Source of the DNA: Lepidodermella squamata | Lineage: Eukaryota; Animalia; Gastrotricha | Length of the DNA: 64,000 nt | Assembly: GCA_047495785.1 (NCBI GenBank) | Contig: JBLDXI010000002.1 | Location: forward strand, 2,046,001 to 2,110,000 | Direction of reading: 5' to 3' | Shown: positions 790 through 15,482 of the stretch, one piece after another | Layout: every line of letters begins with the position of its first letter | Numbering within the stretch: the stretch's first letter is position 1 | The notes under the pieces: generated by a model | Seen by the model: the letters and a program-made list of their open reading frames with translations, nothing else | Told to the model about the DNA's origin: nothing | Database searches by the model: none | Made by a program: the position numbers and the translations under genes

Positions 790-2083
790 TCAGGAGCCCA
801 AATCTGGTTCGTGTAAATAATTGAACTTCGTTAAACGTTCGCTATGAATCGCCCTCAATTGATCGATCACTTGACTGATATTAGGAACTTGGGCTCCCAT
901 TCTCGTCATGAATTCGTGCCAATAAGTTGTCACGTTGAACGTCGGCCCGGTGATTAATTGAGCCAGTTGTTCGAGATTCAAAAAGTTCTTCAGCGTGTGA
1001 CCAGGTAAAGGGCAATGGGCATCGTGCACCCTGAGCCATTCAGACTCTATTTGGTGGCTCGGCCAGCCGACTCGGTCCCAACGAAACTTTTTGCCTGCCT
1101 CAGAACGCCTGCAGATCGATTTTTGAGCATGTCGGTAGAGCTGGATAGAAATCAGGGATTGATCCATGAACCATGAGGCAGAGGGCCCCCGAGTCACATT
1201 GACCGGTAGACCTTCGTATTCGGCTAAAATAGCCGCCTTAATCCGCTCGACAGGGTCAGTATTATTAGAAGTCTGCCTAATATTTTAAAATTTGGTCCCT
1301 TGTTGGTGCGAAGAGTTTCGAAATAAACCTGTAATTCATAACGGAATGCCAAGTAGAAACTCGCATGCCAACATTTGACAACGCAACCATAGCTAGAACC
1401 AACAAGTTATATACAGACATGCATAAAAAATCCTTACGAATTTGGTGTCCTCTGTGGTAAAATGGTTCGCAGCAATGACTACCAGTCAGTCGAATATCGA
1501 AATTTCTCGCCGGAAGCGAGAAAATATCGGTGATAGGAAAAAGGTCTGCATCGCTAGTGACCAGGTAGGTGTCCGGTTCCGAAGCTAATGGCTCCATATC
1601 GGCCGCGTAAAGTCTCCCGACTTGCGCTATACCCACCTTAAGCGACTCACTCGATGGCAGGAATATGACTGTCACATTCCCAATAGCGAGCAGGGTGTTG
1701 TAAACGAAATTCAGGTGGCTACCGGGCTCGAGCCATGGATTCCGCTCTCCAGCAATTAAAACTGTAGTGCCGTAGCCGAGTCGCCGCCAGGCCAAAGCAG
1801 TTAGAGGTAGGTAAAATGCATAGGAACATTGTGAATTGCCTTCCGCGCACTTTTCGTTGCTAATCGAAGGTGTTGTAGCTGAAATAACGGCAACTTTCTT
1901 TAACGGTGGCTTTCGTTGGTAGGCGCAGCTAGGAATCGGCTCGGTATAGAAGTACAGTATGTCCGATGTCTTATCGAGTGTGAAGAAATTCAGTTTCGAA
2001 ATTTCACGAACGAATGCCGTTGCAACAAATGCAAAAGCGGCAATTACTACGAAGAAAGACAGGGGATTACGAGGAAACTTCAT
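790..2083 (-). CDS. Type II membrane DxD-motif protein, GT-A glycosyltransferase-like, paralogue 2 (3 exons: 2083-1438, 1392-1329, 1276-790)
   Basis: N-terminal TM, SYAFYLPLTALAWRRLG, TSDADLFP (DxD), HCC, WFMDQ, DAHCPLPGH. GT-AG introns join ORFs 1277..2083 and 790..1197 in frame. Confidence 0.85.
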
Positions 2084-2268
2084 CTGAGTTCCTTCATCAC
2101 ATTAATCCTCTGGTTCCGCACTTTTGGCTCAACAGAGAGTGCAAAAACAAAGGCGCAGGGAAACAGAATTGTTGGTAAACGAGTACATTTTTATTTGTTA
2201 GCTATAAGTATAGTACACCGGCAGTTTCGCGCTTTATTCAAGCACTTTTCAACTTGGCACTTGGCACT

Positions 2269-3613
2269 TCAAGTTCCTAAATCTGGCTCATGCATGTAGA
2301 AGGATTGCTCAACTTTCTGCGATTCCGCTACTTCTTTTTCGATATCTTCCAACGGTTCGACTTTTGCGCCCATCAGCGTTGTGTAACGATGCCAATACGC
2401 TGTGACGTTTAGGGCTTTCCCAGCAATCATCTGGGCAAGCTCTTGCAGGGCCTTGAAATTCTTCTTCGTATGACCAGGCAGAGGGCAATGCGCGTCGTGG
2501 GCGTTGAACCATGCCTCCTTCGACTTGTGGTTAGGCCACGAAATGCGGTCCCATCGATTTCGGCCTTCCATGAAGTCGGACCTTCGACATGACGCGTTAG
2601 CTGCTGCCAGCCAGTGTTGCAAATGAATTGAGACAATTTGCTGATCGAAGAACCACTCGTTGTTTGGCCCTCTGTGGGCGTTTATCGGCAAATGACCGAA
2701 TTCTTTCATAATCGCTGTTTTGATTCGTTCGACAGGATTCGTATCGTTCGAAATCGCCCTGAACGATAGCAAAATTGAGTTTTGAATGAACGAAATCCTT
2801 CACAATACCGATAATTCATCATTGTATGCCAAGTTGAAATTCGCATTCCAACGCTAGACAAAGCAACCATAGCTTGAAAAATGAAGGTTGTATTTCAAGT
2901 AGTTGAAAGGGCTACGACTTACCAATGCTTTCGCCTTTATGAGGAAAAGGATCGCAGCAATGCCCGTTCGTCAATCTAACATCTTGGTTAGGCAGTTGTA
3001 AATCGTAAATATTAGAAATAGGAAATAAATCAGCATCACTAGTGACTAGGTACGTGTCGGGTTCTAACGAGAACGGTTCGATGTCTGCCGCGAAAACACG
3101 GCCAATTTGAGCCATTCCGACTTTCAAATCATCTGAGGTAGGCAGGAATATCACAGTAATATTACCGAGTTCATTCAGGGTTTTCAAGACGAAATTTAGA
3201 TGAGAGCCTTCTTTATGCCACGGCTTTTCATCGCCAGCGATTAACACAGCCGAGGCGTAACCATGACGTCGCCAGGATAATGCAGTGAGAGGTAGATAAA
3301 AAGCGTAGGAGCATTCCGAATTTCCAGCAGCACATTTTTCGTTATTGACCGAAGGTGTGGTTGCAGCAATCACCGCCACTTTCTTCTTAGGAAGACCGCG
3401 ACTTTTGTCGTCACATTTTAAAGGTGGGTCGTTGTAATGCTGCAGAGGAGGCTTTTTTGGTTCTTCAGCCTTTTGGGTTGTCGGAATTTCATGAATAATT
3501 CTAGCCTGTGGATCAGCGACCCTCCCAGCGTTGCTGATAATGCTTAGAACTGTTGCAGCGATCGCCAAGCTGATTAGTAATAGAGTAAGAGACAACAAAC
3601 GCCTGGGAAGCAT
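2269..3613 (-). CDS. Type II membrane DxD-motif protein, GT-A glycosyltransferase-like, paralogue 3 (3 exons: 3613-2923, 2872-2809, 2758-2269)
   Basis: Same motifs and same two intron positions as paralogue 2; C-terminus HEPDLGT vs HEPDLGS. Confidence 0.85.
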
Positions 3614-9273: not shown

Positions 9274-9601
9274 GGTTATACGCCCATGAATGCGCTTTAT
9301 CTGACGTATGCACTACCGCATTATAACATGGTATTTTTCTGATTACGGCGTCACAATGTATTTTTTACATAGTTTTGCTGGCTGATAAAATCCTCGAGTG
9401 AGAGGCGTACACTATTGTTGCTGATAAATAATTCTAATGCGACCTACAGCTTACAACTCGATATTTTTTATACGTTGCTAGCACGCTTTTCGTCACCGCG
9501 TGCAATTTTACTTTTTTTTAATATGAATCAGCACTGTTGGGGTCTCGTGCCATCATTGCTGTATCATTTTTTATGCTCTTTCATAGGAATTTTGTTTAAA
9601 A

Positions 9602-11953
9602 ATGAGTAGAGCTTATTCAGAGCTCGAAAGTTACCAATATGGCGGGTTCTACGAACCGCAAAATGAATACTACTACCAAGACCAGTTTTATGGTCAGCCT
9701 TTGTCATCGCAATATCCGTACGAGTTGCAGCCGTACGGTCAATACAACGAGCCGGAAATTCAGCCGGGTCAAGTTGAATTTTCGCCACTGAAAAGAAAAG
9801 CTAACTTTTTGGATAATGACTACGCGTTGATGCCTCCACCGCCGAAGATGATGCCGATAGCTGTTGAATTCAGCCGGGATAGTCTGGTCACGCCGCAGCC
9901 AGTGCCGGAAAACTTCTTCGATCCCAACTCGCCGAGCTATATAGCCCCGACTCCTGCAGTCGACGAGCAGCAATCACTCGAGTCACCCGACGACTTGTTC
10001 GGCCTCACCGAAATTCACCCTGTTAGTTTTCCATAGTTAAATCTGCTTAGAATAACGCTCGAAATCGAGATCAAATAGCGATCTCAGGCACCTTATGAGA
10101 TTAACATTTTAATTTTCTGTAACAGGATTACACTGATACGCCGTCCGATATTGACGCATTAGATCCGTCGATTTCAGCGCCGATTTTCGACGAAGATTCC
10201 AACGGAATTCCGATTCTAGACGGCGCTGATGTCAACATTCACGAGTCGCTGTCTTCCGCAGTGGGCATCCAGGATCACCTCGGACAGCCATCGACCAGCA
10301 GCACCAGCAGCTCGCCTGAATACGAGAAGGACCCGCTAAAGGCCTTCAGAGCCGCGAACTTGCCCAAATGCTTCCATGCGACGCATATTGAAGGCTTCGT
10401 CAACAAGCAAATTTGCTATGAAAAACCGGCGAACTTCGTCGTCCGATGTGTTCATTGCCGCGAGGCTTACAGCATGGTAAGCTGATTTATTTTAGTTTGA
10501 ATGAAAAATGAGTCTTCATATTTAATACATTTTTTGGGGAAATTGGAATTGAATTAAAATCGGGAGATTAGACTTGAAAAATTACTGTGATAACCGCTTG
10601 AAGTTGAGGTTAGGGTTAGCATAAAATCCGAATTCTCAATCGGTTTCAGATCAATAATTGTTGAAATAAATTGTCCAAAAATACCAAAATTTATGACTCT
10701 AATTCGATTTTCATCAGAAATTTACGTTTCCTTTAAGTTGGACAACTTTATTGCAATTTTTGCAGTAAATTAAACCAATTAAAAAATTAATTCGCAAGAG
10801 CCAATGATTTTATTCAACTAATTAAACTCAAATTGTTGATCCTTGAAAATTCTTAAAATTTGTTTTTAATTAACTATCGCATTTTTTTAATAGAAAAAAT
10901 CAATTTTGGGAAGCCACGGGCAAAATCATTGATTTCAGCCTAGGTTGATTAAACTCTTGAATTCAGAGGCTCATGTTGAAGATCTTAAATTACCTCAGGG
11001 AACAGGGCAAAATCTCAAACTATTTGAGCCTTAAAAACATTTCACCGAAAGTTTTAAATTCCGATTTTATTTCTTAGCTTCCGCCCGAGTTGTTGGCAAA
11101 GTTTGGAGATGCGCTGAAGGGCCGGTATTATGACCAAAACAAGAACCACACGATCGCTGTTTTCCTTGACATGGGCGATCACGACCTGCTAGTTTCGTTG
11201 ATCTTCGCGAAACAACACGAAGAGGCTGCGATTGCCAGCAACCAACGCCGTGTTACCTTCGAGTGCCACAACACGCTGCAAGCGGCTGACCTAGAGGAAA
11301 ATGTCCACATCTTCGCCGACGAATTGATGCGCGAAGCCCTGGTGGGCTATTTCCAATTGTTGGGAAAATGCGGCTACTACTCGGCGCATTTCAAAGCGGG
11401 CGACGAGGCTAGCCAGCAGTGGTGTCGCACCCTGATCGACCGGGCCATCGAGGCCGGGGCGGCTGTTGACTGCCAGACCATGGGCGCGGCACCGCGGCGC
11501 ATCTACACTTTCTACGACTGGCTGCACGAGAAGGTGAAGAGTCGGCGAAACATCGGCAACATGCCTTTGTTTGACGGCGACAAGCTGATGACGGCCATTG
11601 TTGATACAATTGTCAGACAGGAAAGGCAGAGAGGCCGGTTCGATGAGAACAAAATGTGGCTGGCTGTTAACACGGCGGTAAAGAAGGTGGACGATTTCGC
11701 GTTTGTCGCCGTCCTCCGCAACCCGGGCGCTGTTAAAACGGACTTGGCGTCGCGTTGCAATTGCGTCGATTACTGCCAAGCGGCCCCGGATTGCGGCATG
11801 ACGGCGAAGGCGATGCAGCCCAGCAGGGACCAGTCGATTTTCGACTCGTGCTCGCGTTTTGTTGAAACTACCCACCAGTTCAATTTTCGCTTCGATCAGC
11901 TTGACCTAGCGAAGATTTGCACGAGCGAGGTCATTCAACACGTTTGCTGCTGA
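9602..11953 (+). CDS. Stand-alone divergent p300/CBP-like (KAT11) HAT-domain protein, paralogue 1, ~548 aa (exons 9602-10021, 10126-10476, 11078-11953); likely pseudoenzyme
   Basis: Phase-0 GT-AG introns join three ORFs. The C-terminal ~330 aa align by eye to the p300 HAT: FRAANLP, VVRCVH, SNQRRV, EALVGYF..LGKCGY..AH, QQWCRTLIDRA, MPLFDGD, FAFVAVL, FRFDQLDLAKICT. The N-terminus is Y/Q/P/acidic low complexity with a KRK motif. Confidence 0.75.
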
Positions 11954-12807
11954 TTCCCGCAACGAAGTGCTCTGGCTACTTTTGAGCAAGCCTAAAATAA
12001 CTCGAATTTGTTTTCTTTTTTTTTAAATAATTATGCCGGTCAAGTTGTGATTATAGCCCGGGTGATACCGAAGATTTATGAAACTGGTCGAGGCATTTTG
12101 ATTGAGACTGGTTGAACCGTTCCAATAATTCTTAGATTATAAATTGCTGCTCTAAAATTTATGCTTATATTTTCCCAATAAAAGGAGTTTTTGTATTTTT
12201 GCGGATTTTTTTAATAAAAGTACAAGGGATAAAATAATACGTTCCGGATTAATTTTTTTTATTTCAGCTGGTTGCAGATGAAAGCTTCTGAACAATTAAC
12301 CGCTCATAGGAATTGAGAGCTATCCCCATGGAAAATTTTGTTTTTGGCTGCTGAAGTTCATAATTTACACTTATTTTCTGGCACGAATATTGTTATGGAA
12401 ACGAAAGACGAAGTCGCAAAATTAGTGAATTTGCAAGATTTTTCGCCTCAGATTTACCAATATTCAATTTTAAAGCGGAAGTAGTTTTTTTGCTAAAAGC
12501 GTTAAAAAATTCAACTTCAAAAAAACTGGGCCCAAAATAAAGTTTATTTTCCGGAAACTGACAAAAGACCGGAAACTCTTGTATTTTACATCGTTAACTG
12601 AACAATTTTTCACAGTTTGATCTTAATTATTATTTTACAGAGGGAATATTTTTCGGCAAGACATAATCATGGGCTAAACCGGTAAACACCTAGTCTTCGT
12701 AAAAATTCTTTACAGTAAATTCAAGAAAGAGCGCGCACATGAATCATTAATAATGCAAGAGAGATAAGAGCGCCGTTTTTTGCCGTAAAAATGAGTTATG
12801 TTGTAAG

Positions 12808-14606
12808 ATGAATCATCATCAATTTCGCCATCCCGTAAAACGTTGTGCCGAGCGCTATTTTCCCAGTTTCTACAGGTATAATCTACCGGATTCGACTTCT
12901 TCAGCGACTGGGTCCCGTATCGGGTTTAAATTAGAAAAGATGCTTAGCTTACCGAAAACTAACCAAGAATCGCTCGGCAATTGGCAGGTTCCTGCTCGCT
13001 TGAACGGGCAAAAATTCATTCAAGCCAGGAAGCGTCCCAGCCAAGACTATGAAGGATATTATCGCGAACCACCGAATAAGCGGATAAATTGGTTTCAAGA
13101 GGCAGAAAGACATGACTATTATTCGACAGCTCAAACTGACAACTGGCACCTTGATTTGCTGCCCAATTCTCAAAATCAGACAAATTCTTCGATGTTGTTG
13201 CCATCACAGCCGGATTTCGATCTGTTGTCGTTAGAAATGAACCGATTCACGCTTACTAGTATTAGCCCGGTATGCCTTTTCTAAGAGCTTTGAAACGTTG
13301 AGTATTGAATATGACTAATTTTTCAAGGAATATGAATTCATCGAAGGACCGTCGCAAATGACTCATCTTACACTTTGGCCTGAGTCAACACTTGAGCCGG
13401 TCCCTATCGGCACCCATTTTGACAAAGGAATATTTTATACTAGTTTACCAATGTCAATACCGAGCTCATCAGCTACTGCTACTCCCAACTACGCTCCGTT
13501 CTCCAACTTCCCCTTACGGGCGAAAGGTTAACCTTTAAACTCCATTTCTTTATGTCTCATGTATGTTTTTCTCTAATACAGATCTACCCCGATGTTGGCA
13601 CAGTGACCATATTGAAGCATGGGTTTCAAAGAAAATTCCCTATTTCAGCTTCGCAAAACCGGTCGTCCGATGCATTCATTCTAGAAAATGCTCTTTCAAG
13701 GTAAATTTTTGGATAAAAATTGAAAATTTGCACAAAATTCCAATATTTTAGCTCCCGGAATACCTGAGCCAATACATGCGGGATGAATTGAACGGACAGG
13801 TTGAGGATACTTACACCCGTCATACCATAGCAATATTTCTCGAGAATGACAAACATGACTTGCTGATTTCCATGATTTTCGTAAAGCAACATGGGGCAGA
13901 TTCGATCGAGTCCAATCGCCGGCGAGTAGCCTTATCATGCCAATCGTGCTTAGAAGCCGTTGATTTGTCGCCTGAGATATATAGTTACGCAAACGAGGTG
14001 CTGCTTGAGGCAGTAAGCGGCTATTTTATCATGCTTGGGTCGTGCCGTTTCAATACAGCTCATTTTCGAGGGAACGATGCGACGAGTCAGCAATGGTGCC
14101 GGGGTCTAATCGATCGAGCGATTGAATCTGGGGCAATAATTGACTGCAAAAAGATTGATGGCAGCGAGCGAATCTATAACTTCTACGAATGGATGGCTCG
14201 CATGAGCTGTCGAAGGCAGATACGGAAAATGCCGCTTTTCGAATATGGCACTTTGCCCAGAGTCATCGACGAAACGATTCGCCGGCAATTGAACTCGAAG
14301 AAAGAAGCATTTGACGAGAGAAGTATGTGGCTATCCGTGAATAATACGCTAAAGGAAGAAAATGACTCGATTTTCGTAGCAGTTCTATCTCACGAGTCGG
14401 CAGGTTTACTACCGAGATGCACGTGCAAAGTTTGCTCTAATGCATACGACTGCCGGTTCTTCAGCTCTGATTATCTGGGATCCGCAAATTCCGCATTTGA
14501 TTGCTGGGAAAATTTCCAGTCGTTTCGCAGTATCAATTCATTATCATTCGGTAGCTTCGCTAATGCAATTGCTTCAACGTCACGTTTCATTCAGCTTTAT
14601 AGATAA
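12808..14606 (+). CDS. Stand-alone divergent p300/CBP-like (KAT11) HAT-domain protein, paralogue 2 (exons ~12808/12940-13269, 13328-13526, 13582-13700, 13752-14606; start uncertain)
   Basis: Clear paralogue of 9602-11953 (HTIAIFL..DKHDLLISMIF, SNRRRV, SQQWCRGLIDRAIE, RIYNFYEW, MPLFE, MWLSVN, FVAVL). Shares the phase-0 intron just before LP. Confidence 0.72.
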
Positions 14607-14797
14607 GTTGAAACTGAGTTCTTTGTTCGAAAGCTGGTGTGAAAATAAAAAATTAGGGCGTTCTTTGTTGTCGTTCTCAGGAGTAGTCGTGCTGTTTCCA
14701 CGATCTGACGAGGTAACAAAGGAAACAGTGATTTGTTGTAACATGCATGATTCACAGGCGAGGGGCGAGGGTCACGACTGATTTTGCGCGGTGAACC

Positions 14798-14879: not shown

Positions 14880-15482
14880 ATGACATTCACAACTTTCTCA
14901 AAAGTACTAGTTCTTCTGGGCTTTCTCAGCGTTGGTGAGAGCTGTATGATGGGCTCAAATGGTGATCAATCATCGACTCAAGGATCAAACAATTCTTCGA
15001 TGCAAGGCGGGTTCGACGACTACGACGGGCAGCAGTCTCAAAACTCCGGGATGCGTAACCTACTCCAGGGCGGTATGCAGATGATCGGAAGTATGCAGGG
15101 TGGACGAGGCAATAACCAAAGGTCGAATCAAACTCGAAGCCAGCAACCGGGCGGCCGCATGTTTAACAACTCCAGCAGCGGGTTCGACATTTCTGGAAAC
15201 TTCAATGGCACCCTGAGTCGCAGGCGAGATGACATTGGCAACGGGTCTTCTACGTCCATGGACAATAATGACCAAGGCGGCCGTCGACGTGGTGGCCCTG
15301 GTGGTATGGGTCAAGGTGGCCCAGGGGGTATGCTCGGTGGAATCTCGCCTCAGCTGGTTCAAAGCGTTCTTCAAAGTGGAGTCCTCAACAACTTCATCGG
15401 TGGTGGCGGCAATTCGCAAGGCGGCATGAGAAACGGACGTCAGCAGAATCCTCCAGCGGACTACGGAAATCCCGACCAATAA
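14880..15482 (+). CDS. Secreted low-complexity Gly/Gln/Asn/Met-rich protein, 200 aa, intronless
   Basis: Signal peptide MTFTTFSKVLVLLGFLSVGES followed by C-M-M; MQGG and GGPGG repeats; two RRR sites; AATAAA overlapping the stop. Confidence 0.8.
   Translation: MTFTTFSKVLVLLGFLSVGESCMMGSNGDQSSTQGSNNSSMQGGFDDYDGQQSQNSGMRNLLQGGMQMIGSMQGGRGNNQRSNQTRSQQPGGRMFNNSSSGFDISGNFNGTLSRRRDDIGNGSSTSMDNNDQGGRRRGGPGGMGQGGPGGMLGGISPQLVQSVLQSGVLNNFIGGGGNSQGGMRNGRQQNPPADYGNPDQ

Follow-up and report, generated by a model that had tools for sequence, protein, structure and literature searches.

Introduction

p300 and CBP (KAT3A/B) are central transcription coactivators of animals, and their histone acetyltransferase (HAT) domain, of the KAT11 type, normally lies inside one large protein of single or low copy number. 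Rtt109, the KAT11 protein of fungi, is an active enzyme that binds acetyl-coenzyme A (acetyl-CoA) and keeps the covering loop. We describe here two neighbouring genes, g1 and g2, in a 64,000-nucleotide stretch of the genome of the gastrotrich Lepidodermella squamata (contig JBLDXI010000002.1, positions 2,046,001 to 2,110,000; called the window below and numbered from its first nucleotide). They encode stand-alone proteins with a domain that, judging from sequence and model comparisons, is related to the HAT of p300/CBP. From the residues that were lost, we consider it likely that g1 and g2 arose by an old tandem duplication in a lineage-restricted family that derives from the p300/CBP HAT and whose members are no longer acetyl-CoA-dependent lysine acetyltransferases.

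Catalytically dead CREBBP keeps biological effects via interference with EP300 (PMC13624666; PMC12333230; bioRxiv 10.1101/2023.09.05.556242), and the pseudo-HAT of O-GlcNAcase (OGA), which cannot bind acetyl-CoA, has been described as a domain that binds histones (PMC12747287, PMC12494797). The genome paper of L. squamata reports a GC content of 43% and contains no mention of acetyltransferase, CBP or p300 (PMC11660948); the GC content of the window is also about 43%. No description of KAT11 pseudoenzymes or of dead p300-like paralogues came up in a full-text literature search. The fold family to which g1 and g2 belong is known, and they probably represent a previously undescribed, non-catalytic variant of it and not a new kind of system.

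Results

A relative of g1 and g2 in public sequences

A profile made from the last exons of the two genes was run exhaustively with HMMER against 1.84 billion representative proteins and returned one genuine relative, P0001 (386 amino acids, E 1.3e-30). The second match of that search, a bacterial repeat protein, was rejected as spurious. P0001, a metagenomic open reading frame (ORF), was the one further homologue in public protein collections (about 15 billion proteins), and it alone was found when the family profile was compared with 5.8 billion clusters in a word-indexed search. A scan of metagenome contigs gave no relative, and tblastn of g1 and g2 against the window gave no third copy. 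The family considered below has three members, g1, g2 and P0001. Unrelated nematode families that came out as language-model look-alikes of P0001 were rejected as noise.

P0001 is an uninterrupted, intronless ORF present on four ENA metagenome contigs. It adjoins animal ion-channel genes (BTB_2+Ion_trans; Neur_chan_LBD) and was therefore assigned to another small animal. It aligned with residues 158-498 of g1 at 28% identity, and as the alignment runs through the junction of g1 exons 2 and 3, it gives independent support for the g1 splice model and for the stand-alone architecture. One of the P0001 contigs (L001) carries beside P0001 a pair of neighbouring ORFs, of 190 and 189 amino acids (1705-2277 and 2375-2944), with no Pfam match, as well as intronless potassium-channel and Cys-loop receptor genes; it is an animal contig within an environmental metagenome assembly.

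Similarity of the domain to the p300/CBP HAT

Exon translations, family profiles and P0001 were used as queries. Single sequences found nothing in the PDB. A profile of the last exon of the three members gave 12 PDB matches at E <= 10, all p300 (best E 0.05), and the full-domain profile of the three members (A3) gave 16, all p300/CBP (best E 3.8e-5). The best A3 match, of 26 bits, aligned 213 profile positions with p300 1303-1521.

AlphaFold2 models were built from alignments of three to five rows, and because these alignments are shallow the confidence was low: the mean predicted local distance difference test score was 48.8 for P0001 (60-80 in the core) and 37.8 for g1 exon 3. Foldseek with the P0001 model gave 56 matches at E <= 0.001, all of them p300/CBP HATs (best 3.8e-8), and the top 50 fold matches of the poor g1 model were only p300/CBP (best E 3e-4). 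In VIA-align, the P0001 model reached Z 10-11.6 with 42 p300/CBP entries, over 163-180 residues and at 16-17% identity; residues 57-241 of the model were aligned with p300 1288-1489, and the match with Z 11.6 comprised 166 residues with a root-mean-square deviation of 4.9. The runners-up were HAT1 (Z 8.1) and GNATs (Z 6-7). HAT_KAT11 was present in each of the first six sets of an ESM Atlas shape search, and language-model features of g1 exon 3 led to HAT_KAT11 clusters with a weak score (0.78). Because of the A3 profile matches, of fold searches with only p300/CBP at the top and of the language-model features, we conclude from sequences and models that the domain of g1 and g2 is a very divergent homologue of the p300/CBP (KAT11) HAT. 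Such a homology had been proposed in a first-pass annotation of the window, together with a comparison of predicted structures, and p300/CBP was indeed retrieved specifically, though with models of low confidence.

In the profile-PDB and structure alignments, the motifs come in the same order as in the p300 HAT, from FSAKRLP (p300 1288) through NQRRV, GY..GY..H and QEW..LD.A to P.FEGD. The first-pass annotation had extended this colinearity to the segment from FFVIRL to LEFSSL, for which we obtained no statistical support: the fold evidence spans the N-terminal two thirds of the domain, a profile of the C-terminal third alone found nothing in the PDB, and this region was badly modelled. From the sequence, colinearity of this last third is plausible.

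Loss of catalytic and cofactor-binding residues

Residues were called from the HMMER alignment of the A3 profile; N1389 of the PNQRRV motif served as anchor for the p300 numbering, and the VIA-align ranges as a check on it. R1410 is replaced by alanine in all members (A337 in g1, A340 in g2), and the adjacent T1411 by D in g1, N in g2 and S in P0001. R1462 is A368 in g1, T371 in g2 and I in P0001; both arginines that bind the CoA phosphates are gone in the three members. The catalytic Y1467 is a cysteine in g1 (C373) and g2 (C376) and N in P0001, right after W1466, which is kept throughout (W372 in g1), as is H1434 (H361 in g1). The distance from H1434 to W1466 is 32 residues in p300 but 16 in P0001 and 11 in both g1 and g2. 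In g1 and g2, the missing 21 residues take out most of the L1 loop, which encloses CoA in p300 (1436-1459), and with it W1436, Y1446 and K1456. The replacements of R1410 by A and of Y1467 by C in both copies, and a deletion of about 21 residues in L1, had been noticed earlier by eye, and the profile alignment agrees with them; W1436, previously read as changed to K or R, is lost here too, but within the deletion. The segment from PLF(D/E)G to FVAVL has about 40 residues without enrichment in lysine; its counterpart in p300, of about 88 residues, contains the autoinhibitory loop. The lysine-rich autoinhibitory loop is missing as predicted, no long lysine-rich insert being found in this segment.

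The result is less clear at D1399, a position at which the D1399Y mutation is known to inactivate p300. HMMER places Q (g1), E (g2) and E (P0001) opposite this residue, and an ungapped reading gives the N (g1) and S (g2) of the first-pass annotation. The outcome hangs on the placement of a three-residue indel, since g1 and g2 are three residues longer at this place; P0001 aligns there gap-free, with E.

Corresponding hotspot mutants of CREBBP were characterized in 2026: Y1503C (p300 Y1467C) has no detectable activity, Y1482N (p300 Y1446) is dead, and R1446C/H (p300 R1410) binds CoA about 10-fold more weakly (PMC13624666). g1 and g2 combine natural equivalents of all three defects with the loss of a whole loop. 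These combined losses and the CREBBP data make canonical acetyl-CoA-dependent catalysis by g1 and g2 very unlikely, as far as can be judged from the alignment. The residues lost are those needed experimentally in CREBBP/p300, which supports the earlier proposal that these proteins are pseudoenzymes, inactivity being predicted from sequence.

Architecture of the proteins

Each of the two proteins starts with about 215 residues of variable low-complexity sequence, followed by a single domain of about 330 amino acids; they are 42% identical in the last exons and 46% in the domain. The N-terminus of g1 has a net charge of -28 and is enriched in P, S, D, E, Y and Q; that of g2 has a net charge of -1 and is enriched in S, P, L, T and N. 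The basic patches in which nuclear localization signals had been suspected do exist (KRK at g1 64-66, RKR...KR at g2 74-92), but they are short and are missing in P0001.

No Pfam domain was found in any exon translation of g1 and g2, nor in the plus-strand ORFs upstream of g1 (bromo, RING, PHD, KIX, TAZ and ZZ were all absent). The two genes are separated by only 855 bp, of which 239 are the 3' untranslated region (3'UTR) of g1; there is therefore neither room nor sign, in these Pfam-empty surroundings, for exons encoding bromo, PHD, KIX, TAZ or ZZ domains. The stand-alone architecture first proposed for these proteins holds, and P0001 is also a domain-only protein, with just 56 residues ahead of the domain.

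The three members share an invariant cluster of four cysteines that has no p300 counterpart, RCxC-x(2-4)-C-x(4-5)-DC (residues 328-341 in P0001; see Table 1 for g1 and g2). A second family-specific set was observed at the start of the domain, C-x-H-x2-H in the first helix plus VRC (C222, H224, H227 and C248 in g1). Both sets may be zinc or structural sites.

Constraint on the domain

In the domain, g1 and g2 differ at a proportion of 0.87 of synonymous sites (pS), which is saturated, and 0.36 of non-synonymous sites (pN); pN rises to 0.50 in the N-terminus and to 0.61 in the tail (the last 46 codons). Saturation of synonymous sites indicates that the duplication is old. Raw pS and pN were used, as saturation makes the dN/dS ratio proposed in the first-pass annotation not computable; what this comparison did give is a pN well under that of the tail in the domain.

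The frames, of 548 and 544 codons, are intact over three and four exons. Contigs of three public runs (X1, X2 and X3) were placed on positions 9500-14700 of the window. In the differences listed between these contigs and the window, single-base indels fall in introns, spacer DNA and UTRs. Coding sequence is affected only by a +4 indel at 12921 and a -1 indel at 12934, both in g2 exon 1 and in the same X2 contig, which jointly restore the frame. Counts of substitutions concern a subset, the differences listed, and are indicative only: 12 were synonymous and 20 non-synonymous overall, with 4 synonymous and 3 non-synonymous in the g1 domain core (amino acids 214-480), and 1 and 8, respectively, in the g1 tail. 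In conclusion, these comparisons indicate that the domain is under purifying selection and that the N-terminus and the C-terminal tail are much freer; frames, pN contrast and indel pattern all agree with the intact, constrained ORFs expected from the first reading.

Transcripts and coordinates

The models of g1 and g2, built from ORFs plus splice signals, describe two head-to-tail genes (Table 1). All five introns, two in g1 and three in g2, have GT..AG borders, and each of them was found as an exact joint in the run contigs, which confirms the tandem pair of spliced paralogues and their junctions. The joint of the 601-base intron of g1 (10477-11077) was present in an X3 contig, with flanks of 237 and 230 nucleotides, and the three introns of g2 were all spanned by one X1 contig of 1369 nucleotides. 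The intron preceding g2 exon 4 has the same position as g1 intron 2.

The depth of X1 was nil in g1 intron 2 and in intergenic DNA, and zero beyond 12283. X1 also showed a loose end, T-A20, behind 12192, 10-15 bases past AATAAA. As X1 is spliced, lacks intron and spacer depth and has this T-A20 end, it behaves as RNA, and g1 is polyadenylated at about 12192. X2 contigs cover introns and spacers and are DNA. Therefore g1 and g2 are transcribed and spliced, and a poly(A) end was seen for g1. Contig depth, a poor measure of expression, was far greater over g1 than over g2.

Three further observations concern these transcripts. An AG lies directly before the g2 start codon (12806-12810, ttgtaag followed by ATG) and may be a trans-splice acceptor if the animal uses spliced leaders. 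One low-depth X1 contig contained non-canonical joints in g1 exon 3 (11403-11490, CG..GG, skipping 86; 11525-11651, AC..AC, skipping 125), which are probably assembly artefacts or a paralogue chimera rather than introns. Joints between opposite strands in X1 contigs at 13011-13127 (g2 exon 1) are hairpin-like assembly artefacts, and for this reason the g2 transcript is less well supported in its 5' part than elsewhere.

Table 1. Coordinates of g1, g2 and other features in the window
Feature	Position	Strand	Description
g1 and g2	9602-14606	+	Two spliced genes, head to tail
g1	9602-11953	+	548 amino acids
g1 exon 1	9602-10021	+	Start codon; Tyr/Gln/Pro-rich acidic low-complexity N-terminus, amino acids 1-140; from ORF, GT donor and X1 contig joint 10021>10126
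g1 exon 2	10126-10476	+	Acidic linker, then HAT-like domain from 10345 (FRAANLP, aligned with p300 F1288)
g1 exon 3	11078-11953	+	Remaining HAT-like domain, stop codon; C373 at 11423-11425; L1-loop deletion after 11389
g1 Cys cluster	11756-11794	+	RCxC-x(2-4)-C-x(4-5)-DC
g1 3'UTR	11954-12192	+	AATAAA at 12177-12182; poly(A) addition site about 12192
g2	12808-14606	+	544 amino acids
g2 exon 1	12808-13269	+	Low-complexity N-terminus, amino acids 1-154; X1 joint to 13328
g2 exon 2	13328-13526	+	Ends in phase 1; domain start at 13514 (LRAKDLP)
g2 exon 3	13582-13700	+	N-terminal helix and strand of HAT-like domain
g2 exon 4	13752-14606	+	Remaining HAT-like domain, stop codon; A340 = R1410, C376 = Y1467
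g2 Cys cluster	14418-14453		RCxC-x(2-4)-C-x(4-5)-DC
200-amino-acid ORF	14880-15482	+	Hydrophobic signal-like N-terminus, then Gly/Gln/Asn/Ser/Met-rich low complexity (GGMQ, GGPGGM repeats); no Pfam match
Two paralogous ORF pairs	1277-3613	-	1277-2083 with 790-1197, and 2912-3613 with 2269-2772; similar secreted/membrane-type proteins, in tandem

Discussion

A possible function

The members of this family probably bind partners instead of modifying them. The retained HAT core would be a non-catalytic binding module. Basic segments rich in lysine would be its likeliest ligands, for example histone tails or the autoinhibitory loop of CBP itself. Multivalent contacts like those of activation domains could be added by the N-terminus, which is disordered, acidic and rich in aromatic residues, and the g1 and g2 proteins would then be adaptors or competitors in transcription control, not writers. 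We put forward this combination of a lysine-rich docking core with an activation-domain-like N-terminus tentatively and by analogy. It is doubtful whether the dead HAT is a new module that recognizes lysine-rich segments or CBP, was multiplied in this lineage, and tunes or antagonizes the genuine coactivator.

Several points weigh against a p300-derived pseudoenzyme that acts by binding. Pfam HAT_KAT11 (PF08214), a comparison suggested in the first-pass annotation, was matched neither by the exon translations (E <= 1) nor by full-length P0001 (E <= 10), so that the domain does not belong to this Pfam family by its gathering score. The models are too low in confidence for the geometry of a pocket or an active site to be judged. 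Inactivity is predicted from an alignment at just 15-17% identity, in which g2 and P0001 may have an acidic residue at the D1399 position. Rtt109 has the KAT11 fold and is active with a different catalytic set. Any binding partner of g1 and g2 is pure conjecture, and their nuclear targeting is at most putative, because the basic patches are short and unconserved.

Alternative explanations

Rtt109 needs Vps75/Asf1 as a partner, and the domain of g1 and g2 might likewise still be an enzyme that transfers acetyl or other acyl groups with a remodelled active site and cofactor pocket, perhaps dependent on a partner or using another donor. The fold core with H1434 and W1466, the acidic residue that g2 and P0001 may have retained opposite D1399, the invariant Cys, His and Arg residues proper to the family and the strong constraint on the domain would all fit such an activity. 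We nevertheless find it unlikely, because the losses coincide, affecting the CoA-enclosing L1 loop, both phosphate-binding arginines and the catalytic tyrosine. Moreover, the change of this tyrosine to cysteine kills CREBBP (PMC13624666), and with N instead of C at the Y1467 site of P0001, there is no conserved replacement catalytic residue at this place.

That the resemblance to p300/CBP is not homology, but that of an unrelated, lineage-specific alpha/beta fold to acetyltransferases in general, is highly improbable. Pfam HAT_KAT11 and single-sequence PDB searches without a match, models of low confidence, a C-terminal third that finds nothing and language-model matches of P0001 to unrelated nematode families could be explained in this way; a profile E of 3.8e-5 in which each match is p300/CBP could not easily be, nor could 56 of 56 Foldseek matches at E <= 0.001 to p300/CBP, VIA-align Z scores about 3 units over the next fold, and a colinear motif order that includes NQRRV and W..LD.A. 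It is scarcely credible that g1 and g2 are transcribed duplicates in decay, devoid of function: divergence is strong, the C-terminal tail evolves fast (pN 0.61, with 8 of the 9 listed tail polymorphisms non-synonymous) and contig depth is much lower for g2 than for g1, but frames of 548 and 544 codons have stayed intact over three and four exons despite saturated synonymous divergence, pN in the domain is well under that of the tail, indels lie outside the coding sequence or restore the frame, and a homologue (P0001) is conserved in another species. We retain the interpretation of g1 and g2 as non-catalytic derivatives of the p300/CBP HAT.

Comparison with known systems

If this interpretation is correct, g1, g2 and P0001 would form the first KAT11 pseudoenzyme family of which we found a trace, one that evolved naturally, is expressed and is under selection. 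They would serve as a natural experiment in what remains possible for the HAT fold without chemistry, be it binding of substrates or partners or competition with active CBP, and would delimit a minimal p300-like core devoid of the L1 and autoinhibitory loops.

With the p300/CBP HAT, the family shares its fold as judged by structure search, a colinear order of core motifs from F1288 to about E1521, and conserved H1434, W1466, NQRRV strand and P.FEGD loop. It differs from p300/CBP by an identity of about 16%, the lack of a Pfam match, an L1 loop shorter by 21 residues and the loss of R1410, R1462, W1436, Y1446 and Y1467. In addition, p300/CBP has an autoinhibitory loop and bromo, RING, PHD, ZZ, TAZ and KIX domains, whereas the family members have none of these and are stand-alone proteins with a Cys cluster and a disordered N-terminus. 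Fungal Rtt109 resembles them as a stand-alone protein of KAT11 fold with little sequence similarity to p300; it was not among the profile or fold matches of the family.

The parallel with the dead CREBBP of lymphoma ('zombie enzyme', e.g. Y1503C or Y1482N) is close in one respect, as the identical change from Y to C is found at the same position in g1 and g2. The CREBBP changes, however, arise somatically and singly in the full-length multidomain protein, whereas g1 and g2, as proteins reduced to the domain, carry several losses that are ancient, fixed and in the germline. OGA likewise retains an acetyltransferase fold as a non-catalytic module, with histone binding as its proposed role; its pseudo-HAT is of the GNAT type and fused to a glycoside hydrolase, and has an origin independent of the KAT11-type domain of g1 and g2. 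The OGA pseudo-HAT and dead CREBBP are both precedents for an action of g1 and g2 by binding.

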